Of a stretch of 17,875 nucleotides of DNA, positions 1-17,875 are shown piece after piece (positions within the stretch are counted from its first letter, which is position 1; every line of letters starts with the position of its first letter). The stretch comes from Rhodosorus marinus CCMP1338 (Eukaryota > Plantae > Rhodophyta). The stretch is taken from positions 1 to 17,875 of the forward strand of contig JAMWBK010000017.1 of NCBI GenBank assembly GCA_029953675.1, given 5' to 3'. Below the pieces are notes generated by a model, which searched no databases, was not told where the DNA came from, and worked only from the letters and a program-made list of their open reading frames with translations. Made by a program: the position numbers and the translations under genes.

Positions 1-7
1 CGACACC

Positions 8-720
8 ATGGTTTCCTCCTTGGGGGTCGCCCCGTCTGAATTCCTATATGTGGACTTCACGGGCCCTCATGCCTGTTTTTTCTTGTTACTGACTCGGCTT
101 ACCAGTTCCTTCAATCGCTTGTAACCACTCCCTTCGCGCCCCAGCGCTCTGGCTCTGGCCAACATGATACTGAACTCGTCCTCATGTCTCTTTGTTTGTC
201 GAGTTCGATCGTTTTGACGCCGGCTGGGTTCCTCCGTCGGCCTTGCAAAACCTGGTTGCCTCGCAGGCTTCGGTTGTCGCGCTACACACTCATGCGGCGC
301 GGCTCTCGCGCATACAGGCGAGCCTCTTTCGCGTGTTTTCCTCCCTCGCGGGGTCCTCCGCACCGCGCTAGAGGCCTTCCTCTCCACTGAGGCCACCCTG
401 CTGGAAGCAAGCCCAATTCCTGCGTTTGACCCCTTCTGCCGCCGACTCCTGAGCACCCTTTTCCCTCCCCTCGCCCTGTCTCCGAGGCTCGTGACACCGA
501 CATGGCAGAAGCACCATCGGCCTCTCCGAATCCGCTGGCTCTGGACACCCTCAGCTCAAGACTCCGCTGCTGAAACCCTGTGTCTACTTTCTTCAGGTCT
601 TTTAGTTCCTTCCAAAAGTGCGCCCCCCACGTAAGCGTCGTGCGGCTCCTGAGCCTCCCTCCGAGGCACTCCCCTCCTCCGGATATTTGATCTGCCTTCC
701 CGGACTGAGGGGGAGGCCCG
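8..720 (+). pseudogene. Frameshifted ORF1 homolog of element 1
   Basis: From ATG at 8: MVSSLGVAPSEFLYVDFTGPHACF aligns by eye to ORF1 of element 7 (ALGIPSSYVAHVDFIASHACL). Frameshift in the T run near 77-83. A later PPRKRRAAPEP segment resembles the basic motif near the C-terminus of lineage B ORF1. The end coordinate is approximate. Confidence 0.6.
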
Positions 721-819
721 ATGTCTGGAGTCTTCCCTCCTCCGCGTGTGCGTATCGTCCCGGTTAACTCCCTCGTTTACCAGTGACCGCTCAGCCTGGC
801 ACATGAGCGTGTTCTCTCG

Positions 820-3800
820 TGGTTTTCGCACCTTGTCGCCTCCTACCCGGATTCCGGTTCCCTTCCCCTTTGTCGTCAGAGCACGGCTGTAACGGCTCCT
901 TCGTCGACTTCATAAGCTCCTCTAGGATTGGTGTTGATTTTCTCTGGCAGCAGGTCGCCGCGAACCCTTTCGCTGCTCTCTTCTTCGCTGGGAACTCTTG
1001 TTCTTTTTTTTCCCCGCCTCGTGCTCACCTCCTCTACCGTCCCCGGCAACCCACATCCTCGCCGGGTCCACCCTCGCCGAAAACTGCAAATGTTCCTTTT
1101 CCGGCGACTTTGAGGACCTCGAACGTCTTTATTTCGCTTCTTCTCTCCTCTTTTTTCTCCTAGTGCTCCTCAGCATTTAGGTCTTCTCGACAGAATCGGG
1201 CGATATGTCACGCGGTGGTAGCAGGCGGTAATCTGCGGCGGGCAGCCGGGATCCTCCAGCAGCGGCAACCTGTGGTTCCATACTCCGATGATCTTTCTTC
1301 ACCGCTCCGTTTGCTCTTTCCCTCGGAAGGCTCCCTTGGGACTCCTCGTTTGAATCAGTGTTGGAAGAGTACCGCGCCGCGCCACATCCCAGTGCGCGGT
1401 TAGTGGTCAATCTGGAGGCGGTGCGTGAGTTGGTTCATTATGCTCCGAAGGGCCGTTCTCCAGGGCCCTCGGGGCTGCGGGTGGAATATCTCCGTTTCTT
1501 AAGTGATGAAGGTTTGAAGGCGTTGGCGTTGGTGGTCGAAGCGCTTGTGAATGGTGATCCCCTGTGTGAGTGTGCGTGGTTCTTGGTCGGGCGTTCGCAG
1601 TTGTGTCTGCTTTCGAAGCCCAGCCACACGGCCTCGAGCCCTGCTATTCGCCCTATTGGCCTGGTTGAGGTGGTCCGCAAATTGGCGGCGCGATGGTTAG
1701 TGAAAATCCTGGTTCCCGAATCCCGCCGTTTCTTTGGGCACGTGCAGTTAGGCGTGGGCTATCGTGGTGGCTGTGAGTTGTTGTCTGTTTTACTCCGTTC
1801 CGGAAATGGCGTACTCCCCAGATGCTGGGCTCCTCTCTGTAGATTTTACCAATGCGTTCAACCGCGTCTCTCGTCCGGCTCTCATGCACGTGCTGCGCGA
1901 AGTCTATCCTGTAGGCTTTCCCTTTGTTAGTAGACTTTATTCTCCGCTTGGCCGTGGGGCTACCTATGACACCCTTGGCGCTTCCTCACACACGTTTGCG
2001 GCGCGCACTTTTAGGGTACAACAGGGTGATCCCTTGTCCCCTTTCCTACATGCCTGTGGACTACAACTCGTCTTGCTTTGTCTTCGCTCTGAATTCCCGC
2101 AGGTTCGTACGGTTGCATACCACGACGACGTGTGCCTCCTGGGGCCCCCCGATACTCTAGCGCTCGCTTATGATCGTCTCCGCTCCTTGGCTTCGCGGGT
2201 TGACTTGGAGGTTAATCATCACAAATCGTTCTACTGGGGAGGTGTAGCTGCACAAGAGCAGCAGGTACCTGCGTCGTTCCAGGATATTTGGAGACCGGAT
2301 GGTTTTGTCCACTTAGGCATCCCCTACGGGTCGCCGTCCTTCGTTGAAGGCGAGTTGCTGCAGCTCCTCGGTAAGCACAGACAGCTGGTTGCAGAGCTTC
2401 GACGGCTACCTCCGGGCTTTCTCCAGTGCTCGTTGTTGCTGTTTCGGTATTGTTGCAGTCAGCGGTTAACCTATTGGCTTCGCTCACTTCCAACTCATTG
2501 GGGCCGGTGGTTGGCCACTCGTGCGGATGCTGAAAGTTTCCGTGACCTGGGGTATTTTCTCGATGAAGAGCTGAGCGCTCTGTCAGGTAGGCCTCCCATT
2601 GCGATTGGGGGGACTGGGCCTCTGCAATCGTGTTGTGGTCCAACCTGCAGCCGCAGTAGGGGCCTGGGGAACCGCACTTCCCACTTTGAGCAGCTTGGGT
2701 ATCTCGAAGTTCCGCAATTTGATGGCGAGCCTCTCGCGGGGTGTCTTGCTTCCCAGCGTACCGGAAAGCGCCCAAGACTTGTTTCTGGAGCTCCAAACCG
2801 CCCTGAATTCCTGTACTAGTCTCCCCGAAACCGTTCAACCCCGTCTTCCTGACTGGCGAGCTGTATTTGACCGCTCTCGAGGCTCCGCCCCGGGGATTCG
2901 TCCTGCGCCTGAACCTGTTCTAGGGGAGATTGACCCAGTGGTTGCCGCAGAAGAAGAAGTTCCAGTTGATCCTCCTGATGATTCCCAGCGCGCTGGGAGC
3001 AGAGCTCAAGCACGCACGGATGCGCTGCAAAATATCCTTTCTTGGGACTTGCACCGTGCTGCATATGGCCGACTCCTCGCGCAGATGGTCTCATCTTCTC
3101 GCGCTCGCGCCCGCCTACGTAGTCTTGGAGGGGTTCTTAGCTCTCAGTGGCTCATGACCGTACCAGCCTTTCCGCCACTCACACTGTCGGATTTCGAAGT
3201 GCGTACTTCACTGCGCTTATACCTCGGCTTACATCAGCCCCCTTGGCCGTACGAGATGGGTTCGTCGTGCCCTCTCTGCTCTCAGACTGAAGACAACGCA
3301 GATTTTGGCGCCCAGCTGCTCGCTAGTTGCCCGGTGGTGAAAGGTGCTCGAACCCGCCGCCATACACGGATCTTGAACCTGTTATACCGGGAACTTCGGC
3401 CTATAGTCCGGCAAGCCGGTCTGGAAATCGAACGTGAGAAACCTTTACCCGTCGCGGACTTTCAAAATGATGAACGCCGTGTAGCCGACCTGGTGATCAC
3501 CTGTGACGACAGCCGCCGTACCACATACGTTGATCTTGCTGTTCCTAACCCTCAAGCTAGTCGTTATCTCCCGGCTGCGGGGGAGCGCCGTGGATCTGTC
3601 GCCGCCAGCATGAGACGCCGCAAAGAGATCAAATACGCGGGGGCTTTGTCTTCCCCTGGTGTTCGTGCTTCGGCACTAGCACATCGCTTGGTACCCCTGA
3701 TCATTGAGTGCTTTGGGTTCATAGACTCTGTTGGTTCTCGCTGGCTTCGGGAGTTGTTCCGCGAACGCCCTGACCGTCTTCAATCGTTGTTTACCCGCTT

Positions 3801-3867
3801 AAGTTTCCTGCTGTGGCGCATGAATGCCGCTTTGATGTTGGAGGCGCGAGTTCTTCGCCGCACTTAG
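820..3867 (+). pseudogene. ORF2 of element 1 (RT + zinc knuckle + RLE endonuclease), split by frameshifts
   Basis: Track ORFs 1358-1930, 1764-2819 and 2599-3867 join into one RT-RLE polyprotein with shifts near 1800 and near 2590 (the latter includes a short deletion relative to element 2). YHDD at 2118-2129. The start is uncertain. Confidence 0.9.
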
Positions 3868-3958
3868 TCTTTTTTTCCCCTCGGGGGTTTTGTTTTTTTT
3901 TTTCAACCTCCGATTAAACGATTCGTTTCGCAGTAAGCAGCTGCCCTGTAAAGCTTAC

Positions 3959-3976
3959 GGTTACGTTAGCCTGGGG
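3959..3976 (+). repeat. Junction/target motif, variant GGTTACGTTAGCCTGGGG
   Basis: One mismatch to the motif at 9228, 10168, 14102, 14601, 14907; sits immediately after the element 1 3' UTR. Confidence 0.9.
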
Positions 3977-4013
3977 TTTTCACGCCTTGCGTAGCGCTTC
4001 AGGCTTTGCAAAT
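3977..4013 (+). repeat. 37-bp near-direct repeat, copy 1 (copy 2 at 7727-7763); probable retroelement 3' UTR fragment
   Basis: TTTTCACGCCTTGCGTAGCGCTTCAGGCT is identical over 29 nt in both copies; 2 mismatches over 37 nt. Confidence 0.85.
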
Positions 4014-4110
4014 GAAGAAGAAGAAGAAATAAAGCCAAAGCGAATAAAGCCAATAAAATGATGACGGGCGAAATAAAAAATGAAAGTTTTCATGTGAAAA
4101 CAAGAAAAAC

Positions 4111-4235
4111 CAGAAAAACCGTTGGTGAAGACAAACCCCAGAAAAACCGTTGGTGAAGACAAACCTCAGAAAAACCGTTGGTGAGGACAAACCCCAGAAA
4201 AACCGTTGGTGAAGACAAACCCGAGAAAAACCGTT
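4111..4235. repeat. Minisatellite, 28-bp unit CAGAAAAACCGTTGGTGAAGACAAACCC, about 4.5 copies
   Basis: Units start at 4111, 4139, 4167, 4195, 4223 with single-base variants and no spacers. Confidence 0.95.
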
Positions 4236-4323
4236 CAAGTCTCTCTAAAGTCATGAAAACCCAAAACGGGTCTTTTAGGAGCAAAGCGTTTCTGAGGCAA
4301 AAAGAGTAAAAACCAGAATATCG

Positions 4324-4608
4324 TTAGAATCTTAGTAGATTGCTGGCTTCAATTTGTTGATTAGTAAAGTCCAGTTGAATAGGCCGGGCTCTTGGAGACC
4401 AGGCTGTCGAAGGCCGACTCGCATCCTGGCTTCGTGGCGGTATGAAAACGGGTATATGAACTACGGTTGGTGCTTTTGAGTGGCTATGGTGGCGAAGGAG
4501 CACGCTGAAGGCCCGCGCGAGATTGTTGTGAAGAGTGTTCGTACACGTTGAGGGGAAGGTGTCGTGGCCGGGAAGGGGTTGGGGTCGACATATTAGGTGA
4601 GCACTCAC
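4324..4608 (-). pseudogene. Possible highly decayed RLE retroelement remnant (post-zinc-knuckle and endonuclease region)
   Basis: The minus ORF contains LHNNLARAFSVLL (compare RHNMVRDALATVL in element 3) followed by SRPSTAWSPRARPIQLDFT (compare the RLE RPD...D motif). Similarity judged by eye only. Confidence 0.35.
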
Positions 4609-4701
4609 GAGGATTGAACAAATTTGGTTAAATCAAGACTGAAAAAAAGAAGAGTCCGACGCTTGAAGTGTTCTCGTCGAAGATTTCGAACTATAGTAGC
4701 C

Positions 4702-6113
4702 ATGTTCGCCATGGGTAGAATCATCACGTTCCTTCTGTTAAGTCTGACGCTGCTGGTGACGGTGAGATCTACCGGAGCGGATTCTGCGGATTCAACGTGC
4801 TCTGATGAGCCGCAGTTTACACGCTTTGCTCCTGCTTCCAATCGCTTTATAGCGAATTTGCAAACCAAAAAAGGTTCTGTCGTCGCGACGATCACTATGG
4901 ATGTCGTGGCGAGGAACAACACAAACTGCTTTCTTGCGACGTTTACAGCTGCGGCATCGTCGAGCAGTCTGCTGAAGCTCAGGGCAGGAATCTTCACGAC
5001 AGCAGGGGATCTTCCCACCGGTATGAATAGGGTCACAAGGAGGAAGCTCGTTCCTCAACTCGACCCTTTGAGCAACCCCAGGAGCGAAATGTTCATCTGT
5101 CCCATGAATATGGTGCGGCGGAATACAGATTCTTGCTGTGGACTGCTTGAATTTTTAGCATTTGTCCAAATCCGTGTTGCTCGTTCGAGCGGTACCAAAA
5201 TTGTAACGGGGTATCTAACGCCGACTGGACGTACAAATCGGCCATGCCGAGTCCAAGACCCGGCGAACCCTTTCCGCTACGTCTGTACATTGGAAACCGT
5301 CTGTACACCGGAACCCACCTGCGAGTGTGCCCCGGGCACCTGCCGAGGAGAGGATGGGAGTTGCATTCTTATTAGTGACTTTTCTGCAAACTGTGCAAAT
5401 AATCAGGTGTGCCCACCTGCCCTTCTCCGTGCTCTCCCGTCGACCTTTTGGCGAAGCAGAAACAAGTCTGACCATGTCTCCCTGATTCGTTCCCCTCTGC
5501 TCATGTTTCGTATAGTTTGCTGCGGCGAACCCCGAGAACGAAGCGTGTGAATGCGCGGATCTTGAGTGCTCAGGATCGGAATGCATCGAAGACGGACAAT
5601 GCGTCGGAGCTAGAGGGTGGGGCCAGCAATGCCCTTCTGGCGAGGTATGTCCGTGGACTCTCAACCACAAGTAAACCGAACGGTAATTTACGTTCGTAGA
5701 TGTGGCTCAGAACAAATCTTTCTGTGTCCCGTTTTTGTATCAAGTTTGGAGCAGCGGATGATGCGGGGATATGTAGTTGCCAAGACACTTGTCCGCCCGG
5801 GAGATGTCTTGACGTCGTCAGCAAAGTTTGTGTGGGTCCTAATCCCGGCAATTGTCGCCAGAGTTCCGCGGTATGAGAGATTTGCAACTGGGTCATATTG
5901 CACAAATCGAATTACTCACAATAACTTGGGTATTCACACGGTTCACGCACATAGTTCCAATTCTTGGATCCAGATACGGGCTTTTGTCTTTGTTTGCAAG
6001 GCTGTAATAACTGTGCGCCGGGATCTGTACGTTTGTTTCCCCATTCTGACATCACGCGTGTTCGCCTTTCGAATTGCGATGGACTGCGTCAGTGTTCCTG
6101 TCACGAAAACTGA
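4702..6113 (+). CDS. Four-exon host gene for a putative secreted cysteine-rich protein (exons 4702-5406, 5516-5644, 5745-5870, 5955-6113)
   Basis: N-terminal hydrophobic stretch (MFAMGRIITFLLLSLTLLVTVRS) looks like a signal peptide. Three GT..AG phase-0 introns (donors GTGTGC, GTATGT, GTATGA) join Cys-rich exons in frame (129, 126, 159 nt), ending CSCHEN-TGA. Alternative in-frame acceptor at 5699; alternative start at 4711. Confidence 0.75.
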
Positions 6114-6404
6114 GAAAAAAAAACTAACATGTAATATGGATCTAATTGTCGTCATGTAGGTGCCCACACCGACGGCGGATAAGAGCCGGTGTGAATGTGT
6201 TTCCCAGATTGACCCGTGACCTGATCGTACTAGCCAATTTTCGCGAGAAAGTAAGAGCATGAATTTTCCTCAACGCAGAACGCGAATCTCTCCTGGACTT
6301 TACACATAGTCTGTAACACCCCACCGAGCTAGAAAAGTAAAGGAAAAGCTACACACGCTGCCGCTCACGCAAGGTTACTCAGCTCTCCCTTCACACCGCC
6401 TCCA

Positions 6405-7023
6405 TCACCGCCGCCTTGACGTCGATGGCCTACTACTTATCTATGCGGTGATGACGAACGGTAATGACGGGGCGAAGACGACTCCCTCAAAAACCATAAG
6501 ACTCGATCTGAACATCAGGGAGGTGTCACAGGGGACAGTGGCGCGCGAGTTCATCACGAATGCGATTATGGCGCAGAGTCCAATTCCCGCCCAAGGTAGA
6601 ACAGTGAAATAGTCCCATCCGATGCGTGAGGCTTGGCACAGACGTTGCATTCAGGGGGATTGATGGAGGCAGCAGCTGCATCGCCTGCGGGAAGCGCCTT
6701 AGACCAAAGAGCGAGCTTTCGAATACGAGCAAAAGTGCGGGAGTTGAGGCGGGAAGTTGTCCATCGCCTAGCCAGCGAGAGCTGCAGTTCCAGTTGATCC
6801 GTTGAGCTGGCGAGATCCTCAAGATGTTCGGCATTAGGCCCCGGGACACGCAGTATCCAGACGGCTCATAAAAGGGATTGCCAGCGGCATTATTCCGAAG
6901 CCCGCGGAGCCACGCGGCATAAGAAGCAATCGGGTGAATGCGAACGCTCGTAGCCAGGCCAAGCCCTCCCCACTTGCCAGGTAATCGAATTTGGGTTTTC
7001 ACTGTATTAGGTGAGAGGAGCAT
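6405..7023 (-). pseudogene. Decayed, internally deleted lineage-B-like retroelement fragment in inverted orientation
   Basis: QIRLPGKWGGLGLATSVRIHPIASYAAW matches QISLPCRWGGLGFATRARIQPIAFFSAW of element 4. CNVCAKPH (alternate frame) and FHCSTLGGNWTLRHNRIRDEL match the zinc knuckle. GSRLRPVI...AIDVK with stops matches the RLE of element 3. Confidence 0.85.
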
Positions 7024-7566
7024 TGGGGTTTTGTTTCTTTTTCGGTCACGAGCGTGTTCGTTTACGGGAAGCGCTTCCTTTGGTACGCCTTCCCCCCGTT
7101 TTTCAGGGGTGCGTCGTTTGCAATTGCAACTACTTCTGTCTTCCGGGTGAGAGTGTTGCGGGGCCTTTCCTATTTGGGTTGGGTGTGTCGATTATTCTCT
7201 CGTTGAGGTCTCATATTGGTGGTGCAACGTTTCCTTTGCGCTTTCCCTCAGGATGGTAGGGATATCTCCGCGCTCGACGGAGCCTCATCCCAAGGAGGCA
7301 CTGCCAGGTGGGGGACTCCGTGTTCGCCTCAGCTGCGGCACCTTTTCTTCCGAGGTTGACTTGGAGACCGCTTCTGGCACCCAGGCGCGTGCACTTATCT
7401 TCGTTGTCACCAGCCTGATAACGGCTGCGAGTGATCGTGGAGTGCTTCCTCAGCTCACCCAGAAGCTAGGTGGGCTGGAATCGGGGCCGCTGGCCAGGCC
7501 AAATTCAAATTCGGACGAGAATTTGAATTGCACCAGAGTGGCAGCGTTGGCTGAAGGCAGTCGGGT

Positions 7567-7767
7567 TTGGAGTGGCTGCGGAAATGTTTTGCTGAGCATC
7601 CTGTTGAATATTTGGAACTTTTGCGTCGTTTAAGCGTGTCTCTGTGGCGCTACTCGAGCAGCATGCTTGGTCAGGCGCGCCATAGGCGCCTGGGTTTGCA
7701 CGCTTCCCTACCTAGTTCTTAGTCCCTTTTCACGCCTTGCGTAGCGCTTCAGGCTATGCTAATAAAG
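7567..7767 (+). pseudogene. 3' remnant of another lineage-A-like element (C-terminus, stop 7720-7722, 3' UTR ending in AATAAAG)
   Basis: LEWLRKCFAEHPVEYLELLRRLSVSLWRYSSSMLGQAR aligns with element 1 SRWLRELFRERPDRLQSLFTRLSFLLWRMNAALMLEAR. Confidence 0.7.
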
Positions 7768-7994
7768 TCCACCCACTCTGCGACTAATCAGCGAACGTGA
7801 AGGGTTCGAACACCACGGCGTCGGATTGGGGACTGACAACTTTGTCCAAGCATCCTGCGAGCGAGTTTTGGCACGGCACAAGTCCACCCACTCTGCGACT
7901 AATCAGCGAACGTGAAGGGTTCGAACACCACGGCGTCGGATTGGGGACTGACAACTTTGTCCAAGCATCCTGCGAGCGAATTTTGGCACGGCAC
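7765..7994 (+). repeat. 115-bp tandem duplication at the 5' truncated end of element 2
   Basis: 7765-7879 equals 7880-7994 except one base (CGAGTTTT vs CGAATTTT); AAG begins both copies and the following sequence. Confidence 0.95.
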
Positions 7995-9222
7995 AAGCAA
8001 CTCACCGACGCCATTGAGCACCTACCCGACAGCATGCTGCAATCGGCCTGCTTGCTTTCCCGCTTTTGTGCCGGTCCCAGACTCAACTACTGGTTGCGCA
8101 GCCTGCCTCCAGCTTGGGGCTCGTGGATCGCGGCTAAAGCCGACGAAATGACCCTGCAACACTGGGGAACGCTCTTGGATGAGCCCCTCGATCTTGAAGC
8201 TGCTCCCGACAGGGACTTTATTCGTGCACAGATCGCTCTACCGTTGCGATTAGGGGGATTCGGCGTCGCTGACCGTGGGCTGGTATGCTCGCCAGCGGCG
8301 GTTGCCTCCTGGGCTACCACGCTGCGAACGTTGGTGACCTTCCAGATGCGAAGTGCCTGCCTCTTGGCTCGAGCTTTGACCAACGAGGATCCAGTGACCC
8401 TGCCGCCCCCGCTTTTGACAATTTATGATGGTCTTCAACACGCGTTCAGGAGGTGCAACGCCGTGCCGGACGCAAATCGGTCCCGCTTTCGTTCCTGGAG
8501 GGAGCTGTTATGGGGACGAGCTGAAGCGATTGAGGATTGTCCCCTCGACCGAGTTCTTGCCGATGACGGAGAGGCCAGCCCCGGGTCACCTGTTGCAGAC
8601 TACCCGTGTTTGAGCCGATTGTGGAGCTCCCGCACTGATGTGATTCAACATAGCCTCACCTGGGGCCAACACAGTGCCGCTCACACAGTCATGCTCAATT
8701 CTCCTCTCACGCCGCCTACCACTGCCGCTCGTCTCCGCGGCATGGGAGGCCACCTCTCGCACTTGTGTTTAACCACTCTACCGTCGTCATTGAGTCATCG
8801 TCTCGATGCTTTCCAGTTCCGTTCTGCCGCACGGATCTATCTCGGTTTGCCACAGGCTCCGTGGCACTCTAATCGGCCGTCTTTCTGTCAGGGATGTGAG
8901 AGCCGGATTGACGCTAGTGGCTACCACTTCCTGGGTTCCTGCGGACTGTTACGAGGTCTCCGTACGAGGCGTCACACTCGCCTCAAGTACATCCTCAGCG
9001 AATCTTTGACTCGGATAGGGCATACGGTTGAGGTTGAGTCGGAACTGCCCAGATCCATCTCGGACTCTGCACCGCCCCGTTGTATAGCCGATCTCCTCGT
9101 CTCCGACGCTGCTGCCAGACGCTCAACATATGTGGACCTTGCGATTACCTGCCCCGTGGCCAGCGCCCACCTCACCGCAGCCGCCCGCCGCCGGGGGGCC
9201 GCGGCTTCAGCCCTTCGAAGAG
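7765..9222 (+). mobile_element. Element 2: lineage A subfamily, truncated at both ends (late RT region, linker, zinc knuckle, first half of RLE)
   Basis: Open frame from about 7880: EGFEHHGVGLG, RLNYWLRSLP, QIALPLRLGGFG, CQGC...HFLGSC...RTRRH, IADLLV...YVDLAI; homology stops at ASALRR before the RLE lysine motif. Confidence 0.92.
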
Positions 9223-9248
9223 TCTGGGGTTACGTTAGTCTGGGGTAC
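9221..9248 (+). repeat. Junction motif in tandem: AGTCTGGGG TTACGTTAGTCTGGGG TAC
   Basis: About 1.5 contiguous units define a 16-nt period; fused directly to coding sequence of element 2. Confidence 0.93.
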
Positions 9249-10089
9249 CCAAAAACTCCTCTCCAACTGGAGTCACCGACGGGCATTCGAGGAAATGGTG
9301 GAGAACGCGGAGATCAGCGAGACGGCACGTGCGCGAATACGCTCCTGCAAGGGATCAGGAGGCGGTACTTGGCTGCGAGACTTGCCAATGAAACACGGAC
9401 GCGGCCTAAGTAGCGGAGAACTGAACCTGAGCCTTCGACAACTGTTGGGATTGCCCCTGCCGGGTGTACGAATACTTAGTACGTGTACGATATGTTCCCA
9501 ACCACACGACGCTGCAGGCATTCAACGCCTTCACCACTGCACCAGCTCTACCGGCAGTTGGACAATTCGGCATAACATGGTCAGGGACGCCCTGGCGACA
9601 GTGCTGAGACAATGGCGACTAGAAGTGACAATAGAACCGACCGGACACTACCAAGGCAGTCGGCTTCGGCCTGACATTCTAGCCCGACACCCACGAACAG
9701 GCAAGCTCTACGTGATCGATGTGAAGGTGACCTCGCCTTTGCAAAGAACACACCTCCACAAAGCGTCTTGGGAGACCGGGTATGCGGCACGGAAAGCGGA
9801 AAAGTTTAAAGAGTCCAAATACCGTGACAGTATCGGAGAACATAACGACGACATCTTCGTCCCCTTCTGCCTGGAAACATTTGGGCAGATGGGACAACAA
9901 GCGAGTGAGTTCCTCAAGGAAGCGACTATACACCTGGATCAGCGGGCAACGCAAGTAAGTGAGGCTCGGGCGATCTTGAACCGCACTTTGTGGAAAGGAA
10001 ACGCTATCCTTGCCACCCAGGCTCGTCGTGTCGACGAAGCAGACTATGACATCGTCCCTATCTTCGAACGTAGCCACACAACCCATTAG
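9247..10089 (+). CDS. C-terminal part of ORF2 (zinc knuckle + RLE), 5'-truncated
   Basis: CTICSQPH...HHC...RHN; RLRPDILARHP...YVIDVKVTSP...AEKFKESKY; FVPFCLETFG; stop TAG at 10087-10089. Confidence 0.85.
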   Translation, partial: TQKLLSNWSHRRAFEEMVENAEISETARARIRSCKGSGGGTWLRDLPMKHGRGLSSGELNLSLRQLLGLPLPGVRILSTCTICSQPHDAAGIQRLHHCTSSTGSWTIRHNMVRDALATVLRQWRLEVTIEPTGHYQGSRLRPDILARHPRTGKLYVIDVKVTSPLQRTHLHKASWETGYAARKAEKFKESKYRDSIGEHNDDIFVPFCLETFGQMGQQASEFLKEATIHLDQRATQVSEARAILNRTLWKGNAILATQARRVDEADYDIVPIFERSHTTH

Positions 10090-10167
10090 GGGTTTCTTTG
10101 CTGACCAATAGGATCCTTATTGCTTCTTAATGGGCTCCAATAGGGAGTTCTTCAGTAAAGTGTACGC
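9249..10167 (+). mobile_element. Element 3: 5'-truncated lineage B (subfamily B1) copy with intact 3' end
   Basis: Begins directly after the motif in mid-ORF2, ends with the 3' UTR ...CAGTAAAGTGTACGC before the next motif. Confidence 0.93.
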
Positions 10168-10185
10168 GGTTACGTTAGTCTGGGG
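10168..10185 (+). repeat. Junction/target motif GGTTACGTTAGTCTGGGG
   Basis: Exact motif between the 3' end of element 3 and the truncated 5' end of element 4. Confidence 0.95.
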
Positions 10186-10187
10186 CA

Positions 10188-10883
10188 ATTCCTCTTCTCC
10201 AAAGCGCAATCAGCCGGGGTGTGTTCCGGACTGGGATTTTCGGATCCTTTACCATGCGACACCCCGATCGACAGGTGAGCCTGTACACCGGGCACGGTTT
10301 AGAGGCGGATAACCTGCTGGGGTTCAACGAGCGGCAACGACTCGCCGGCGGAGATGTCAGGGCTCAAACGCTGAGACGAGCGATCGAGCAGATCATACGC
10401 ATCCGCGCGCGGCTGAGCCGTCGACATCTCTCGTTTACAACTCTCGCCCGAGTGCACGAGATGCTGGACCAACGGCTTGAAAAGTTACAAGCCCTTCAAC
10501 AGCAACCTGCGGTATCCAGGGAGAGCGCGGAACCCCTAACGACTGCAGCCGCACCAAACGCAGCCGCTGAAGCCTCGTCGTCTCCGGACGATGCACAGGC
10601 AGCCTGTGGGACTGTTGCCACTCAGGGTGACTCCGGTGGAACATCCCAAGTACCGCAGGATGTGGAAGAAGAGGACAATCCCCATGCGGAACTCTCGTGC
10701 AACTTGCCGGAACCTCCTCAACTTAAGCGCTCGCGCCGGTCTGCCAACGGATCTAGCACGGATGCAGAAATGACACCAGCTCCCCTCGACCCCACACCGA
10801 GCGAGAATGGACTACAACCTGAAACTGCAGCCAATACAAACCCGTCGGTTCAGCAGGAAGCGCAGGACAACGAGCAATCATAA
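10188..10883 (+). CDS. ORF1 C-terminal portion (5'-truncated) of element 4
   Basis: IPLLQSAISRGVFRTGIFGSFTMRHPDRQV is nearly identical to element 7 ORF1; acidic/Pro-rich tail; TAA at 10881-10883. Confidence 0.85.
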   Translation: MPLLQSAISRGVFRTGIFGSFTMRHPDRQVSLYTGHGLEADNLLGFNERQRLAGGDVRAQTLRRAIEQIIRIRARLSRRHLSFTTLARVHEMLDQRLEKLQALQQQPAVSRESAEPLTTAAAPNAAAEASSSPDDAQAACGTVATQGDSGGTSQVPQDVEEEDNPHAELSCNLPEPPQLKRSRRSANGSSTDAEMTPAPLDPTPSENGLQPETAANTNPSVQQEAQDNEQS

Positions 10884-13800
10884 TGCCGTCCAGACGCAGG
10901 GGACGTAAACGCCCACGAGAAGAGCCTCTGTTCTTCTCTGACCGGGAGGCCTGGATTTGCCGCTGGAACGCTTTCGTAGCTGAGATCACGGAGGAGGGGA
11001 GGCATTGGACGCGCATCACACATTGCCCGGTGCCCACACGACACTTCGTGCCCCGAGCACACGTTTCTACATGGAGCCGGCTTCTTCGGGCTGCCCTCGA
11101 GCTTTCTCTGGACGCGACAGCACCTCCATTAGCGAGCCTGCTTCTCGTCGGCCTTCCGGGTCTGGTCCTGGGCCACTCCACCCTTGACACAGGGGTACAG
11201 GTCGCACATGTACTAGAAGGAGAGTTCCAGCGGGTCTGGACGGCCCTTGAGGAGAAAGCCGCCTCAATGAAACCCCCACCTACACCACACGGTGCCGAAG
11301 ACGTTCGTCGACGAGTCGATGGCCGCCGCAAACAAGCACTTAAACTAGCACGACTCGGCCGCCTCTCGGATGCTGCAAGAAGACTCGAGGCCACCGAAAT
11401 GGCGCCTTTCACAGCGGCTACCTGGCGGCAACTACAACAGCTCTTTCCGAGCCCCGCCAGTGTGGATTCACCGGTGGAGATTGTGGAAGCCCTCCAAGGC
11501 CTACTCACGACGGACAACGACACACTGAAGAGGCGGTGGGATCCAAAAATGGCTGCCGACGAAGGCCTCCTCTCAATCGTGGCACGACTACCTCAAGGGA
11601 CGAGCCCTGGACCGAGTGGAATGCGCGCGGAACATTTGCAAGGGGCGAACCAACAGACTCAGGTAGCACTGATTCGGGTCTTGCGCCAACTCGCCACCGC
11701 GCCCGGGCGATTCTCACCCCTTCTGCTACGAGCCTTGCGTAGCAGTAGACTTCTGCCTTTCTCGAAGCCAGCACAGGGGGGTAACTCCCAGGCCAAGGCA
11801 GGGATCCGCCCAATAGGCGTGCCGGAGGTCCTACGCAAAGTGGCAACTCAGTGGGCGCTGCGAGCGGTGATGGACCGGGTCCGCGAGCTGTTGGTGCCGT
11901 TGCAGCTGGGAATCGGGGTCAGCGGTGGCTGTGAACGGTCACTGCACGCCATCCAGGCCCACCTGTCATGTGAACCAGACTCGGTTGCACTTCGACTGGA
12001 CCTCGAGAACGCCTTTAACCGCATTGACAGGCGAATTGCCAAGAAACTGGTGGCCCAGCACTTCCCTGAGCTCACAGCGGTGTATAGGCTCGGATATGGA
12101 GGCGATGGGGAAACACCGACGCTTTGTGGATGGCGGACGACGCAAGAAGACAACCACCTGCACAAGGACAGACTGACGCTGCAAGCAGAAACCGGAGTAC
12201 AACAAGGCGACCCTTTAGGTCCGGTGCTACATGCGCTCTCCCTGGCCCCTTTTCTCAAGGCACTCAGCAACAAGTTTCAGGGAGTCACGATCGTCGCCAT
12301 CCATGACGACATCACTCTGGTCGGCGCATTGCCTATATTGAAGGAGGCTCTCCAATGGGGACAGACCCTGCTACCGTGCCTTGGAGCCCGCCTGCAGCTC
12401 AGCAAATGCAGCCTTTATGGTCGATCCCTCACCACTACACGCTTGGTGAACCGTGCGATTCCCGGCGTGCAAGTGACTAGGGAAGGCCTCACAATCCACT
12501 CCATCCCCATCGGCACTCGGCAGTACATCGAGCACGAGTGTAGACGGCTGCAGAACAAACACGAGACGCTGTTCAAGGAGATTTCGAGCCTGCCAACCGA
12601 TGAACTGCCTATCCAGCTTGCGCTTTACAGGTATTGCGCTGAAACGAGGTTGGATTACACCTTGCGATGCCTTGCCTACCCGTTTGGACGAGCTCTGGCC
12701 AGGGAAGCGGACAGTATGAGCCGATACCACTTAGAGGTCTTGTTTGGTGGCCTCTGCACGACGGCCTTGGTCGAGGATGAGCTGATACACCCGGTCAACG
12801 AGCAGATTTCGTTGCCCTGCCGATGGGGCGGATTGGGGTTCGCGACCCGTGCAAGAATACAGCCGATTGCGTTCTTCTCGGCCTGGGCGCAGACCCTGAG
12901 AGACCATGCGGGTCAGTGGCCCTATATAACGGAGGTGGAGCGACAGGTCAGGCAAGGTGGCGACATACACATCAGCCACCTAGGCCGACTGCAGGTGTCA
13001 ACGGAGACGATCGGTGAGCAAATCCGCGCGTCTAGTCGTGCTATAGAGCGGAGACTGTGCCCAGACACGGCGCCGCGGATCCGGAGACTGGCCAAGCTGC
13101 CCGAATTGAGAGACGAAGCCGCACCTGAAGTAGCGGACTCCCCTCGCGATTGGAACCATGGTTCAATACAACAAACCCTCTCTAGGGAGGCACACCATCG
13201 CGCGTTCCAACGTTTGGTCGGCAACGAGGGCGTTTCGCATGAACACCGTGCAAGAATCCGATCGGCGGCCGGCTCGGGTTCGGGGGTATGGCTGCGGGAA
13301 CTACCGTTGCTAGAGCCGAGAAAGCTGGACTCACAGGAATTGCAGGTAAATGTTCGACAACTGCTGGGGCTGCCGATTCCGGGGTTGCGGACAACGGAGC
13401 AGTGCACCAGTTGCCGTAGGAAACATGGCCCAAATGGGGTGCAACGATTTCAACACTGTCCAACATCGACGGGACTATGGCAGAGACGGCACGACGAGCT
13501 CTGTACGGAGCTAGGGAGATGGCTCAACCGATGGAATTTTCTTGACATACAGCAAGAACCGCAGAGGTATTTTGAGAATTACCAGCTGCGACCAGATATC
13601 GTGGCGACCCATCCAAAGACCTTTCAAAAAGTACGCGATCGATGTGACGGTGATTTCACCGCTACAGGAAAAGTACATAAGGCGTGGCAGTGCAGAAAAC
13701 GGGTATGCAGCGAAACTGGCGGAGAACTACAAGCTCGCGCACTATAAAGAGGCGATGAGTGTGGAAAAGCCCGAGGAGAAGTTCATCCCGATCGCGATAG

Positions 13801-14021
13801 AGACCTTTGGGCGGAGCGGGAGGTTGACGCAAGACTTTTTGCGGGACAGTTGTAAACACTTGTTGCATCGAGATGAGGAGCTGAGGGATGCACGATCCCA
13901 GTTAAACAGGATCCTATGGCAGGGCAACGCGGCGATTGCGCTTGGCGCTCTACGTGCGGACCAGTTGGAGAACCCACTGGTTCCTGTTTTTTCTTTTGAA
14001 CGTAGCATGAGACCCCGGTAG
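10883..14021 (+). CDS. ORF2 of element 4: reverse transcriptase + zinc knuckle + RLE endonuclease, one +1 frameshift near 13626
   Basis: Track ORF 10883-13747 continues in 13542-14021 after an extra A in CAAAAAG. Motifs: GTSPGPSG, IRPIGVPE, LDLENAFN, GVQQGDPLGP, AIHDD (12296-12310), CTSC...HC...RH, RPDI...YAIDVTV...AENYKLAHY. Confidence 0.95.
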
Positions 14022-14101
14022 CGGGGTTGTTGTGAGTGATTCCCTAGATAGCAATCGGCTTAGTGTTACGTCGCATTAGGCGACTGCCCAATAAAGCTCA
14101 C

Positions 14102-14118
14102 GGTTACGTTAGTCTGGG
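14102..14118 (+). repeat. Junction/target motif GGTTACGTTAGTCTGGG followed by T and 13 A
   Basis: Motif directly after the element 4 3' UTR; A run at 14120-14132. Confidence 0.93.
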
Positions 14119-14119
14119 T

Positions 14120-14600
14120 AAAAAAAAAAAAATGCGCTGGATGTGACGGTGGTGTCACCATTACAGGGAAAATATTTGCGGCGGAGCCAAGATGATAGCG
14201 GATACGCGGCGAGAGCTGCGGAGAAGTGGAAAATCGCTCACTACAAAGAAGCGATGGTGATCGAGAAACCGGATGATAAGTTCATCCCGATAGCAATAGA
14301 GACGTTTGGGCGTACGGGGCAAATGGCACAGGAGTTCCTCCGGGACAGCTGCAAGCACTTACTGCATAGGAGTGAGGAGCTGAGAGACGTGAGATCCCAG
14401 ATAAACCGGCAACTATGGCGAGGTAACGCAGAGATAGCATTAGGCGCTTTGCGCGTGGACCAGCTGGAGAATCCGCTGGTACCTGTTTTTTCTTTTGAAC
14501 GTAGCATGAGACCCCGGTAGCGGGGTTCCAGTAAGTTTTTCCCTAGATAGGATTAGACGTAGTGTTGCGCTGCAGTAGGCAGCTGCCCAGTAAAGCTTAC
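14120..14600 (+). mobile_element. Element 5: short 5'-truncated B2-related copy (RLE C-terminal half + 3' UTR)
   Basis: LDVTVVSPLQ...FIPIAIETFG...FSFERSMRPR is a diverged paralog of the element 4 C-terminus; stop at 14520. Confidence 0.93.
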
Positions 14601-14618
14601 GGTTACGTTAGTCTGGGG
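14601..14618 (+). repeat. Junction/target motif GGTTACGTTAGTCTGGGG
   Basis: Exact motif between elements 5 and 6. Confidence 0.95.
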
Positions 14619-14906
14619 TTTGGGCAGATGGGACAACAAGCGAGTGAGTTCCTCAAGGAAGCGACTATACACCTGGATCAGCGGGCAACGCAAGTAAGTG
14701 AGGCTCGGGCGATCTTGAACCGCACTTTGTGGAAAGGAAACGCTATCCTTGCCACCCAGGCACGTCGTGTCGACGAAGCAGACTATGACATCGTCCCTAT
14801 CTTAGAACGTAGCCACACAACCCATTAGGGGTTTCTTTGCTGACCAATAGGATCCTTATTGCTTCTTAATGGGCTCCAATAGGGAGTTCTTCAGTAAAGT
14901 GTACGC
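14619..14906 (+). mobile_element. Element 6: 288-bp 5'-truncated copy of subfamily B1
   Basis: Matches 9880-10167 with two substitutions seen by eye. Confidence 0.95.
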
Positions 14907-14957
14907 GGTTACGTTAGTCTGGGGTTAGTCTGGGGGTACAGTTACGTTAGTCTGGGG
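14907..14957 (+). repeat. Irregular tract of junction-motif units (telomere-like)
   Basis: GG TTACGTTAGTCTGGGG TTAGTCTGGGGG TACA GTTACGTTAGTCTGGGG. Confidence 0.92.
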
Positions 14958-15020
14958 TGACGGGTTTGGACGGCTTTGTTTGTGAAAAACGACGGAAAAA
15001 GGTGATAAAAAGTTACAAGT

Positions 15021-16612
15021 ATGATTGTGAAGGAGGTACGCGGGCCGTACCCCGAGCCTCTTGTGATCGCGGGCCCACACACCTCGGGTACCCGCGAAAT
15101 GGAGAGGGCGAAAGAGCTGCTACAAGAGCAGCAGCAGCAGCAGCAGCAACAGCACCAGTATAGGGGAGCAGAACAGGAGGCAGAGAGGAATGCAGAACAG
15201 GGTGCAGCGGAGCAGGCCACAGCAGACCCAGCTGTCGCCTTTCTCCACCAACTGCAGAGCTACGACCACTGCTATACCGCCCTGGGAATCGGCCAGTCGG
15301 ACATCGCCGACTTCTACCAGGCCGCCTTCAACCTCTATTCCCGCATCAACTGCTCAAAAGAACTTCAATCAGTGACAGGACGTCTGAATGAGCTCGCCAA
15401 AAAACCGCATATGTGGCAAGACGGACGAGCCACTACGACCCCGCCTCAACCCCCGCAGCAGCACCCGCGGACGGCGGCGGTCAATCAACATGCGGCAGAA
15501 CCCATCATCAATCAACTTGCGGAGGGGACAGGTGTCCTTGCCTCACTGGACTATGCCACGGCCTTCCCGGTTGCCGGTATCAGCAGCACACGGCCAACGT
15601 ACGCTCAGAGGACTGCCCAAAGTACTCCAGCTCGAGAATCAGAGGCTCAACTCCGACCAGCCGGGCGCCCGGGCCCACAGAGCCAGCAGGCAGCGCTACG
15701 ACAGTTGCACGCCACTGTGGGAGGGTCCTCCTGGGGACCTGAGACCAAGCCGGTACTGGCGACCCTGAGGAATGTAAGACCGCCACGGATGGACGAGGTA
15801 GCCCCATCGGATTTCACCACGGTCCTTTGCAGAGCCTTGGGGATTCCGAGCTCTTATGTGGCGCACGTGGACTTCATCGCTTCCCATGCGTGCTTACTCT
15901 GCCATCCGGACGCGATTCCGATTCTACAAAGCGCCATCTCTCGGGGCGTTTTCAGGACGGGCATCTTCGGTTCGTTCACCCAGAGACACCCCGATCGGCA
16001 AGTGACTCTCTACACGGGCCAGGCACTGGATACAGACAACCTGTTGGGCTACAATGAACGTCAGCTCATTGCCCCAGCGAATATCGGGGCTCAGACCCTG
16101 AAACGGGCGATTGAACAGACTATCCGGATCCGCGCGAGACTCCGCAGAAGGCAACTCTCGTTCAACACACTCGCAGCGATACACGAGTACCTGGAGAGCA
16201 GACTCGGAGCCCTACAAGCCACACAACGTACTCCAACGGTACCCGGGGAGAGCGCGGAACCCCCAGCGCCTGCAGCCGCCACGAACGCAGACCCTGAAGC
16301 CTCGTCCCTTCCAGGGGATGTACAGGCAGACCGTGGGAGAGTTGACGCCTCGGTTGAGACCAGTGCGACTTCCCAAGTACCTGAGAACGCAGCACACGAA
16401 GACAATCCCCATGCGGAGCTCCTCTGTGCAACCTTCCGGAGCCACCTCAACAGAAGCGCTCGCGAGTGGCCGCCGATGGCACCGGACCGGATACTGAGAT
16501 GACTCCGGCAGCCGTGGAGACTCCACAGGATACCACTGGGACACAGGTTGCCGTTGACGGCAACCATCACGCGATGGACACGCAGGAGAGCCAGGAAAAC
16601 CCAGCGCAATAA
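15021..16612 (+). CDS. ORF1 of element 7 (about 530 aa, unknown family), one frameshift near 16420
   Basis: Track ORF 15021-16502; after the shift the alternate frame reads CNLPEPPQQKRSR (as in element 4) and ends at TAA 16610-16612. PolyQ, central conserved block, disordered tail. Confidence 0.85.
15129..15152 (+). repeat. (CAG)6CAACAG polyglutamine tract in ORF1
   Basis: Read directly; encodes Q8. Confidence 0.9.
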
Positions 16613-17875
16613 TGCCGAGCAGACGTAGGGGAATCAAACGACGCCGCGAAGAGCCTCTTTTCTTCTCGGATCGTCAAGACTGGATCAGGCGGTGGAGCGT
16701 CTTCGTCGACGACGTCACGGAAGGAGGCAGGCAGTGGACGCGCCTTACACACTGCCCGGTTCCCACACGGCGATTTGTGCCACGCGCCCAGGTTCACACA
16801 TGGAGCTGCCTCTTCCGTGCTGCATTAGAGCTCTCTATGGACAGCACCGCACCAGCAAACGCCAGCCTGCTTCTTGTCGGACTTCCAGGCCTTGTCCTCG
16901 GACACTCTGCACTTGATGTTGGCATTCAGGTATCGCATGTGCTTGAAGGAGAATTCTCTACGGTCTGGAGCGCTCTAGAGGACAAGGCGTCTATGCTGTC
17001 GCGTACTACCGCACCGCAAGGAGCTGAAGCGGTTCGACGCAAACATCTCGGGCGCCACAAGCGAGCGCTGAAACTAGCACACCTTGGCCGCCTTTCAGAC
17101 GCAGCTCGGAGCCTACAGGCCACCGAAATGGCACCTTTTACCGCGGCTACGTGGAGACAACTACAAGCGCTCTTTCCCAACCCGGCGGAAGGTGACTTAC
17201 CAGACGAGATTGCACACGCACTGCAATCTTTGCTCGCTCTGAATACCGAAACACTAAAGCGGCGGTGGGATTCAAGAAAAGCGGCCGACGAGGGCCTCAT
17301 GTCGATCGTGGCACGTCTTCCTCAGGGCAAGAGCCCAGGCCCTAGCGGTCTCCGAGCGGAACACCTCCAAGGTGCAACCCAACAGACGCAAGTGGCGTTG
17401 ATTCGTGTATTGCGACAACTGGCGACCGCTCCTGAGAAATTTTCCCCGGCTCTGACCCGCGCCCTTCGCAGTAGTCGACTCCTGCCGTTCACGAAGCCTA
17501 ACAAGGGTTCAGTGCCGCAGGAGCATCCCGGAGTTCGCCCTATCGGAGTGCCAGAAGTTTTGCGCAAGGTAGCAACGCAATGGACTCTTCACGCGGTTAT
17601 GGACAGGGTGCATGAGCTCCTGGTGCCCTTACAACTGGGTATAGGAGTAAGTGGCGGGTGCGAACGCTCGCTTCACGCGATCCAGGCCCATTTGTCATGC
17701 GAACCCGATTCGGTGGTCCTTCGCTTAGACCTTGAGAATGCCTTTAATCGCATCGACCGACGCCTTGCCAAGCAACTGGTGGACGAACACTTGCCGGAGC
17801 TTGCACCAGTGTATAGACTTGGCTATGGAAGCGACAACGCGGACTCACCGACGCTCTGTGGCTGGCGATCTTCCT
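16612..17875 (+). CDS. ORF2 N-terminal part of element 7 (to RT motif LDLENAFN), partial; frameshift in T run near 16660
   Basis: MPSRRRGIKRRREEPL, then open to the window end after a one-base shift: GKSPGPSG, VRPIGVPEV, QLGIGVSGGCE, LDLENAFN. Missing from the ORF track, probably because it has no stop inside the window. Confidence 0.9.
   Translation, partial: MPSRRRGIKRRREEPLFFSDRQDWIRRWSVFVDDVTEGGRQWTRLTHCPVPTRRFVPRAQVHTWSCLFRAALELSMDSTAPANASLLLVGLPGLVLGHSALDVGIQVSHVLEGEFSTVWSALEDKASMLSRTTAPQGAEAVRRKHLGRHKRALKLAHLGRLSDAARSLQATEMAPFTAATWRQLQALFPNPAEGDLPDEIAHALQSLLALNTETLKRRWDSRKAADEGLMSIVARLPQGKSPGPSGLRAEHLQGATQQTQVALIRVLRQLATAPEKFSPALTRALRSSRLLPFTKPNKGSVPQEHPGVRPIGVPEVLRKVATQWTLHAVMDRVHELLVPLQLGIGVSGGCERSLHAIQAHLSCEPDSVVLRLDLENAFNRIDRRLAKQLVDEHLPELAPVYRLGYGSDNADSPTLCGWRSS

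Follow-up and report, generated by a model that had tools for sequence, protein, structure and literature searches.

What marks an RNA as the proper template of a retrotransposon is the question raised by a 17,875-nt (17.9-kb) stretch of the red alga Rhodosorus marinus CCMP1338 (GenBank assembly GCA_029953675.1, contig JAMWBK010000017.1, positions 1 to 17,875; here called the window), in which repeat mapping reveals head-to-tail copies of retrotransposons without long terminal repeats (non-LTR retrotransposons), all on the + strand and all decayed or 5'-truncated. We number the copies E1 to E7 and distinguish A-type (E4 and E5), B-type (E3 and E6) and C-type sequences (the open reading frame [ORF] of E1 and the remnants C1 and C2); coordinates are on the + strand unless stated otherwise. 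An original prediction, made from the DNA alone, held that a conserved stem-loop at the 3' ends of these copies is the signal by which the protein of the second ORF (ORF2p) recognizes its own RNA for target-primed reverse transcription (TPRT). We find that A- and B-type copies do carry a 3'-terminal hairpin of constant position and loop. By analogy with stringent-type elements such as R2, SART1 and UnaL2, we put at roughly one in two the probability that it is a cis-acting RNA module of a site-specific non-LTR family that is recognized by the element's own protein.

A sense-strand hairpin at the element 3' ends

The hairpin is found at 14569-14583 in E5 (GCTGC-AGTAG-GCAGC, a hairpin that the centroid structure of the 96-nt 3' region contains), at 14070-14084 in E4 (GTCGC-ATTAG-GCGAC, local minimum free energy [MFE] of -7.5 kcal/mol), at 10132-10150 in E3 (GGGCTCC-AATAG-GGAGTTC, with two G-U pairs, -9.2 kcal/mol) and, in identical form, at 14871-14889 in E6, which is a 99% copy of E3. 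Positions and sequences are exactly those originally predicted, and the downstream layout described there also holds: the hairpin is followed by TGCCC or TTC, the heptamer A(A/G)TAAAG (14589-14595 in E5, 14090-14096 in E4, 10154-10160 in E3, and 14893-14899 in E6), a further 5-7 nt, and then an 18-nt junction motif that we call T (GGTTACGTTAGTCTGGGG). In both the A-type (E4, E5) and the B-type (E3/E6) elements, the hairpin lies 3-5 nt upstream of the heptamer, and every copy of these two types combines the loop A-N-U-A-G with a C-G closing pair, giving the motif C-A-N-U-A-G-G. When both strands of the window were scanned for a 5-bp stem with no more than two G-U pairs enclosing an A.TAG pentaloop, six hairpins were recovered on the + strand and none on the - strand, all six of them in element 3' regions; dinucleotide shuffles (n = 1000) gave a mean of 0.22 and a maximum of 3. 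The six are not independent, E6 being a duplicate of E3 and E4 being homologous to E5, but even so the enrichment and the strand bias are far above chance. None of the Rfam families matches any part of the window.

Between E4 and E5, 19 of 72 columns of the 3' untranslated region (UTR) differ (26%), and the hairpin, with differences at 5 of its 15 nucleotides, is no more conserved than its surroundings. As predicted, there are two compensated pairs: all four stem differences fall in them, one changing from C-G to U-A and the other from U-A to C-G, and the fifth difference is the variable nucleotide of the loop. In neutral simulations at 26% divergence, only 0.3% of runs retained all five pairs while changing two or more of them on both sides (P ~0.003), and among runs in which at least four substitutions had struck the stem, it survived in 2.4%. 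An alignment of E5, E4, E3 and E1 has 90% of its cells paired, with double changes at three pairs, and sliding the register by 1-3 columns lowers the pairing to 20-60%. Further, the folding z-score of the E3 region is -2.7 on the sense strand as against +0.17 on the antisense strand; since the two G-U pairs of E3 would be C-A mismatches on the antisense, these observations together point to a structure of the sense-strand RNA. The restriction to the + strand and the G-U pairs thus fit a cis-acting RNA element, and the position of the hairpin, its strand restriction and the upkeep of its pairing through double changes and G-U pairs are directly observed. Three other pairings were considered and rejected: a long-range TGAG/CTCA helix closing the whole UTR conflicts with the stop-codon hairpin of E3 described below, a pairing of CCCUAGA with the UCUGGGG of T is seen in E4 and E5 and is absent from E3, and a pseudoknot between the loop and the linker (UAG with UUA) amounts to only 3 bp.

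A second hairpin of similar design is found at the end of ORF2. In E4, ACCCCG-GTAG-CGGGGT (14012-14027) holds the stop codon TAG (14019-14021) in its loop, and E5 has an identical hairpin at 14511-14526 with its stop codon at 14518-14520. The counterpart in E3 is AACCC-ATTAG-GGGTT (10080-10094; stop codon 10087-10089), and that of E6, its twin, lies at 14819-14833. Hence, both the A- and the B-type present an xUAG loop on a 5-6-bp stem at the ORF2 stop, with stem sequences that differ between the subfamilies. In E4 and E5, the hairpin is part of a 46-nt block (13983-14028 and 14482-14527) that spans the last codons, the hairpin itself and the start of the UTR; the block is identical in the two copies, while the ORF around it is ~70% identical. 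This identity reflects either constraint at the nucleotide level or gene conversion.

Proposed template recognition and its alternatives

Taking these features together, the 3' module of the A- and B-type elements reads, from 5' to 3', as the stop-codon hairpin, a spacer of ~45 nt, the ANUAG hairpin with a stem of 5-7 bp, 3-5 pyrimidine-rich nucleotides, A(A/G)UAAAG, a subfamily-specific linker of 5-7 nt, and T. The elements themselves appear to encode ORF1 followed by an ORF2 with a reverse transcriptase, a CCHC knuckle and a PD-(D/E)xK restriction-like endonuclease. We propose that an element protein most likely recognizes the loop-presenting hairpin or hairpins and thereby picks its RNA as the template; the leading candidate for the binder is the ORF2 reverse transcriptase, although the ORF1 protein is also possible. 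A nick in or beside T would then prime cDNA synthesis.

Precedents for such a scheme are well documented, and the background cited in the original prediction, namely that stringent non-LTR elements recognize 3' stem-loops, is correct (PMC3747384; PMC11194090). The tails of stringent-type long and short interspersed elements commonly have 3' stem-loops with compensatory changes (PMC3747384, section 4.3). Thus, UnaL2 from eel (L2 clade), SART1 from silkworm (R1 clade) and a plant L1 lineage resemble the elements studied here in having a short 3' stem-loop with a compensated stem and fixed loop nucleotides that is followed by a short terminal sequence or repeat, and the pentaloop and its distance to the terminus in the window match the description of UnaL2/SART1-type tails (PMC3747384). 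These elements differ in their apurinic/apyrimidinic (AP)-type endonuclease, in their clades and in their loop sequences, and the second hairpin embedding the stop codon is a feature of the window elements that sets them apart. The R2 protein (R2Bm) attaches to the 3' UTR of its own element with an affinity dependent on two stem-loops (PMC11194090), and R2 has been seen in a structure at the start of TPRT on that UTR (PMC10499050). R2 inserts site-specifically, as the window elements probably do, shares their C-terminal restriction-like endonuclease architecture and, if the analogy is sound, their template selection via the 3' UTR (PMC11194090; PMC10499050). It differs in having a single ORF, a structured 3' UTR of ~250 nt and a target in the 28S rDNA, as against two ORFs that overlap at UAAUG, a UTR of 80 nt and the 18-nt T motif in the window elements; the protein similarity to R2 is marginal. 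The design falls in the known class of stringent 3' recognition hairpins, with the loop motif, the stop-codon hairpin and T as new details. As recognition of 3' stem-loops by non-LTR reverse transcriptases is already well established, the general picture is unchanged. If confirmed, the hairpin would provide a compact RNA handle of 15-19 nt with a defined loop motif for a deep-branching family of apparently site-specific retrotransposons with a short, 18-nt motif associated with insertion, and small template-recognition signals combined with short targets are what makes R2-type systems tractable for biochemistry.

In the original prediction, the hairpin was specifically the ORF2p recognition signal for TPRT. 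The conserved structure, the fixed loop, the fixed 3' position and the restriction to the sense strand all agree with this, while ORF2p as the partner and the need for TPRT are drawn from analogy with the systems above. Several observations weigh against recognition of the hairpin by an element protein. The covariation sample comprises only four distinct 3' ends, and 39 of 500 column shuffles match its pairing and double-change values; hence, RNAalifold on E4, E5 and E3 does recover the predicted helix with three double-changed pairs, but covariation across the four sequences is not significant. The folding z-scores of the whole 3' regions of E4, E5, E1 and C2 are only -1.0 to -1.3, and the MFE structure of the whole 96-nt E4 region lacks the hairpin in favor of a competing pairing. 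In E5, the GCAGCTGC palindrome allows a shifted hairpin, GCAGT-AGGCA-GCTGC (14572-14586), whose stability equals that of the predicted one (-11.0 versus -10.8 kcal/mol). In the 96-nt region, the centroid contains the predicted hairpin and the MFE fold the shifted one; the shifted register is 85% paired across the four sequences, albeit with one double change only. The motif is also not family-wide, as C-type elements have another fold and no ANUAG loop. Among distant relatives with ~29% identical ORF2 (L001 and L005-L007), a covariance model of the module gave no match, and a hairpin scan of the 3' ends of L001 and L005 did not find the motif.

The C-type remnant at 7727-7767 had been assigned a GCG-TAG-CGC hairpin within a longer stem. 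That sequence is present (7739-7747), but the favored fold is a different one, in which the TAG lies in the stem and not in the loop: GCGTAGC-GCTTCAG-GCTATGC (7739-7759; -10.6 kcal/mol, 65% of the ensemble), with a 7-bp stem GCGTAGC/GCTATGC and a 7-nt loop, which lies directly ahead of TAATAAAG and ends 1 nt before the AATAAAG at 7761-7767. A further copy of this hairpin is found in C1 at 3989-4009, where heptamers follow in the tail at 4028/4043. Thus, C-type elements too have a hairpin right before the heptamer, though not of the ANUAG design. E1 has a C-type ORF, and its last 29 nt (3930-3958; GCAGTAAGCAGCTGCCCTGTAAAGCTTAC), with TGTAAAG as the heptamer (3947-3953), are an A-type tail 94% identical to E5; the UTR is thus a chimera, or else these 29 nt are an A-type copy truncated at its 5' end. 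The resemblance to E5 sets in at 3930, within the 5' arm, so only 3 of 5 pairs of the stem can form, and the E1 tail is uninformative on the hairpin. The UTR of E1 itself has, at 3881-3919, a 9-bp stem (TCGGGGGTT/AACCTCCGA) with a U-rich loop directly followed by ATTAAAC, i.e., the same hairpin-plus-hexamer layout in another sequence.

Among the alternatives, the one that survives best, which we regard as unlikely yet deserving of serious attention, is that the module is mainly a signal for 3'-end formation, with A(A/G)UAAA acting as poly(A) signal, cleavage at the 3' end of T, and the hairpin in a supporting role or there by accident; the template would be chosen via the poly(A) tail or T and not via the hairpin. 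ARTAAAG is indeed over-represented in the window (12 matches versus 2.3 expected), with 7 of its 9 + strand matches at element 3' ends, and it also occurs as AGTAAAG at 6336-6342, ~118 nt past the stop codon of an intron-bearing host gene. In E3, E4 and E5, the end of T falls 23-26 nt past the hexamer, at the canonical distance; the T of E4 is followed, 24 nt downstream of AATAAA and just before E5, by a run of 13 A residues (14120-14132); and a distant relative has a similar ending, ...AATAAAT(A/G)TGTTGTTGTT. Moreover, the linker between heptamer and T (CTTAC in E5 and the E1 tail, CTCAC, or TGTACGC in E3 and E6) follows the subfamily and not the insertion site; hence, at least the linker, and with it sequence past the heptamer, is part of the template. 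The likeness to the canonical signal (AAUAAA/AGUAAA, 10-30 nt before the cleavage site) thus extends to the hexamer variants, the distance to the end of T and one copy with an A-run. It stops at the G that follows the hexamer invariantly in 9 of 9 + strand copies, for which a poly(A) hexamer has no need; at the mostly absent A tails, the T of E1, E3, E5 and E6 having no A-run after it; and at the adjacent hairpin, whose compensated pairs and fixed loop motif a poly(A) signal leaves unexplained. In E3 and E5, a helix can also mask the heptamer. The A-run itself can be read in two ways, as E4 has CAAAAAG at the homologous position: it could be the poly(A) tail of E4 or an expansion, and thus perhaps partly native sequence, of the AAAAA of E5. 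Finally, 3'-end formation does not exclude a recognition role, and A(A/G)UAAA probably serves as a poly(A) signal too. The two roles go together in SART1, which is of the stringent type and yet polyadenylated (PMC3747384).

We consider it improbable that the functional unit is instead linear, that is, C-A-N-U-A-G-G or a repeated UAG bound single-stranded by the ORF1 protein or a host UAG-binding protein, with the stems being secondary or the real fold differing through a shifted register or a larger domain. Such a unit would account for the distribution of CA.TAGG (12 occurrences on the + strand, including 8 in 3' regions, as against 3 on the - strand), for a third E3 copy at 10106 that lies in an imperfect hairpin, and for 5-6 TAG trinucleotides in the UTRs of E4 and E5 where mononucleotide shuffles predict ~1.5, an enrichment that is nevertheless lost under dinucleotide shuffles for E5 and E3. 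The isoenergetic fold of E5 could likewise speak for a shifted register, as could the E1 tail, which retains the shifted hairpin only. However, the compensated pairs of E4 and E5 belong to the predicted register, the shifted one showing a single double change and pairing at 4 of 5 positions in E4 and 3 of 5 in E3, and the E1 tail says little, as it probably begins at a 5' truncation. Least persuasive, and in our view quite improbable, is that the hairpins are functionless GC-rich short stems inherited from a common ancestor of related 3' tails, and that their apparent compensation arose by chance in a very small post hoc sample. In favor of this stand the sample of only four sequences, the column-shuffle control (39 of 500), the modest thermodynamic z-scores and a motif definition that came after inspection of the sequences. 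Against it, the A- and B-type stems agree in position, loop and closing pair without any common sequence, the six hairpins are strand-specific and contrast with 0.22 expected, the neutral simulation disfavors chance, and a second hairpin of the same design stands at the stop codon in both subfamilies.

The junction motif T

T follows E5 at 14601-14618 and is found again at 3959-3976, 9228-9245, 10168-10185, 14102-14119 and 14907-14924. It marks six 3' junctions (E1, E3, E4, E5, E6 and E2b/E3, E2b being a copy truncated at both ends), with the tract ahead of E7 holding a seventh copy; these 7 matches in the window compare with 0.01 expected. At the E2b/E3 junction (9221-9245), the sequence is GTCTGGGG followed by TTACGTTAGTCTGGGG, i.e., 1.5 tandem units of 16 nt, and before E7 (14907-14957) there is an irregular T-like tract (TTAGTCTGGGGG TACAG TTACGTTAGTCTGGGG), the irregular part of which covers 14925-14957. 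From its sequence, T may accordingly be a short tandem, possibly telomere-like, repeat. The E2b junction with its T units also resembles a healed break. Alternatively, this apparent target may belong to the transcribed 3' tail rather than being purely a target. The exact T 18-mer had only chance-level matches in metagenome and genome collections, which yielded neither empty sites nor a native T locus, and a literature search for T and its sub-strings returned unrelated primers only. We know of no convincing match of T to a fragment of U2, U6, 5S, 7SL, spliced-leader RNA, tRNA or rRNA.

Several known elements with a restriction-like endonuclease form comparable arrays, in which 5'-truncated copies also occur. 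Utopia, which targets U2 snRNA genes, has head-to-tail copies with short target tracts between them, and in some of its families, target-site duplications of 20 bp and tandem arrays containing U2 fragments occur (PMC4640811). Copies of MoTeR are likewise arranged head to tail, separated by half to >20 telomere repeat units (PMC7367193), as are those of FoTeR, with short telomere tracts at junctions that are asymmetric (PMC12857005). What sets the window elements apart from all three is T, which has no match in U2 or among canonical telomere repeats. Were T a G-strand telomere-like repeat, the orientation of the elements would be opposite to that of MoTeR and like that of SART1.

A more far-reaching conjecture, which we offer as a long shot, is that the two xUAG hairpins form a bipartite recognition signal, in which the ribosome halting at the stop codon releases the ORF2 protein directly onto its binding site and thus builds in cis-preference, and that T is an unusual 16-nt telomere-like repeat (TTACGTTAGTCTGGGG). 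If so, these would be the first elements with a restriction-like endonuclease known to target a telomere-type repeat, in a SART1-like orientation and in a protist. The stop codon within the loop offers a testable idea for how cis-preference is enforced.

The elements and their array

The assignment to the non-LTR retrotransposons begins with ORF2, which matches the Pfam family RVT_1 (E = 4e-9, above the cutoff), and all of its homologues have the corresponding PF00078 domain; the Pfam search found no match to Exo_endo_phos, i.e., no AP-endonuclease domain, in ORF2. Read from the translation, the C-terminus of E3 contains CTICSQPHDAAGIQRLHHC, RHN, RPDI and IDVKV, and that of E4/E5 contains CTSC...QHC, RHD, RPDIV and IDVTV. 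The succession CxxC...HHC, RHN/RHD, RPDI and IDVKV/IDVTV has the layout of a CCHC zinc knuckle and a putative PD-(D/E)xK restriction-like endonuclease, a call made from motifs alone, as Pfam holds no profile for that endonuclease. Matches to sequences in the PDB are weak and restricted to L1 ORF2p and R2 reverse transcriptases, the latter at E-values of 0.003-0.005. Judged by the sequence of both the reverse transcriptase and the C-terminal region, the elements are classed as non-LTR retrotransposons with a predicted restriction-like endonuclease, of the R2/NeSL/CRE/Utopia grade. Their ORF1 and ORF2 overlap as TAATG, with stop and start sharing one A (10881-10885 and 16610-16614), which suggests translational coupling of the two frames. 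Coupling through a stop-start arrangement is reportedly used by SART1.

A transcript in the MMETSP collection is 83% identical to the ORF2 of E7, and MMETSP relatives of the E3 C-terminus are 75% and 48% identical, indicating that the host is a marine protist and that the family is expressed; the remaining homologues are at most 29% identical to ORF2. In homologue searches with the ORF2 body and the C-terminal domain, the close relatives were MMETSP proteins only, apart from one contaminant contig in a metagenome-assembled genome (MAG) that ends before the 3' UTR. An exact look-up of the window ORF2 and its MMETSP match found no contigs, and a protein-guided scan of viral contigs found no further copies.

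Along the window, the array consists of E1 (1 to ~3958, decayed), the 41-nt C-type remnant C1 (3977-4017), the C-type remnant C2 (~7253-7767), E2b (7765 to ~9220), E3 (9246-10167), E4 (10186-14101, comprising the tail of ORF1 and ORF2), the 5'-truncated E5 (14133-14600), E6 (14619-14906) and E7 (14958 onward, with a complete 5' end, ORF1 and the start of ORF2). The ORF2 of E4 is frameshifted at ~13640, just upstream of the IDVTV endonuclease motif, and the ORF1 of E7 has a premature stop at 16500-16502 (region 16440-16502), upstream of the TAATG overlap; hence, the long copies in the window are not intact. At 7767/7768, a C-type 3' end directly abuts a 5'-truncated element with no T between them, and 3929/3930 is perhaps a second junction of this kind. 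Such junctions are consistent with end-to-end template jumping during reverse transcription, an activity known for the R2 reverse transcriptase. The 5' end of E2b has a 115-nt tandem duplication (7765-7994) with 99% identity.

After C1, within 4011-4250, there is (AAG)n together with repeated units of AATAAAGCC, perhaps a product of slippage at the 3' end, and downstream of these, in the same interval, a 28-nt tandem repeat (CAGAAAAACCGTTGGTGAAGACAAACCC) in five copies. The array is broken by a 3-kb unique stretch with the intron-bearing gene (~4702-6219, + strand), which encodes a cysteine-rich repeat protein with a signal peptide and no Pfam match and has introns of the form GT...TAG. On the - strand, 6410-7023 is a fragment of a fourth subfamily, whose closest DNA-bearing relative is contig JBCBSL010000655.1 from a MAG labelled 'Cyanobacteria bacterium J06638_22'; this contig is evidently a eukaryotic contamination of that MAG.

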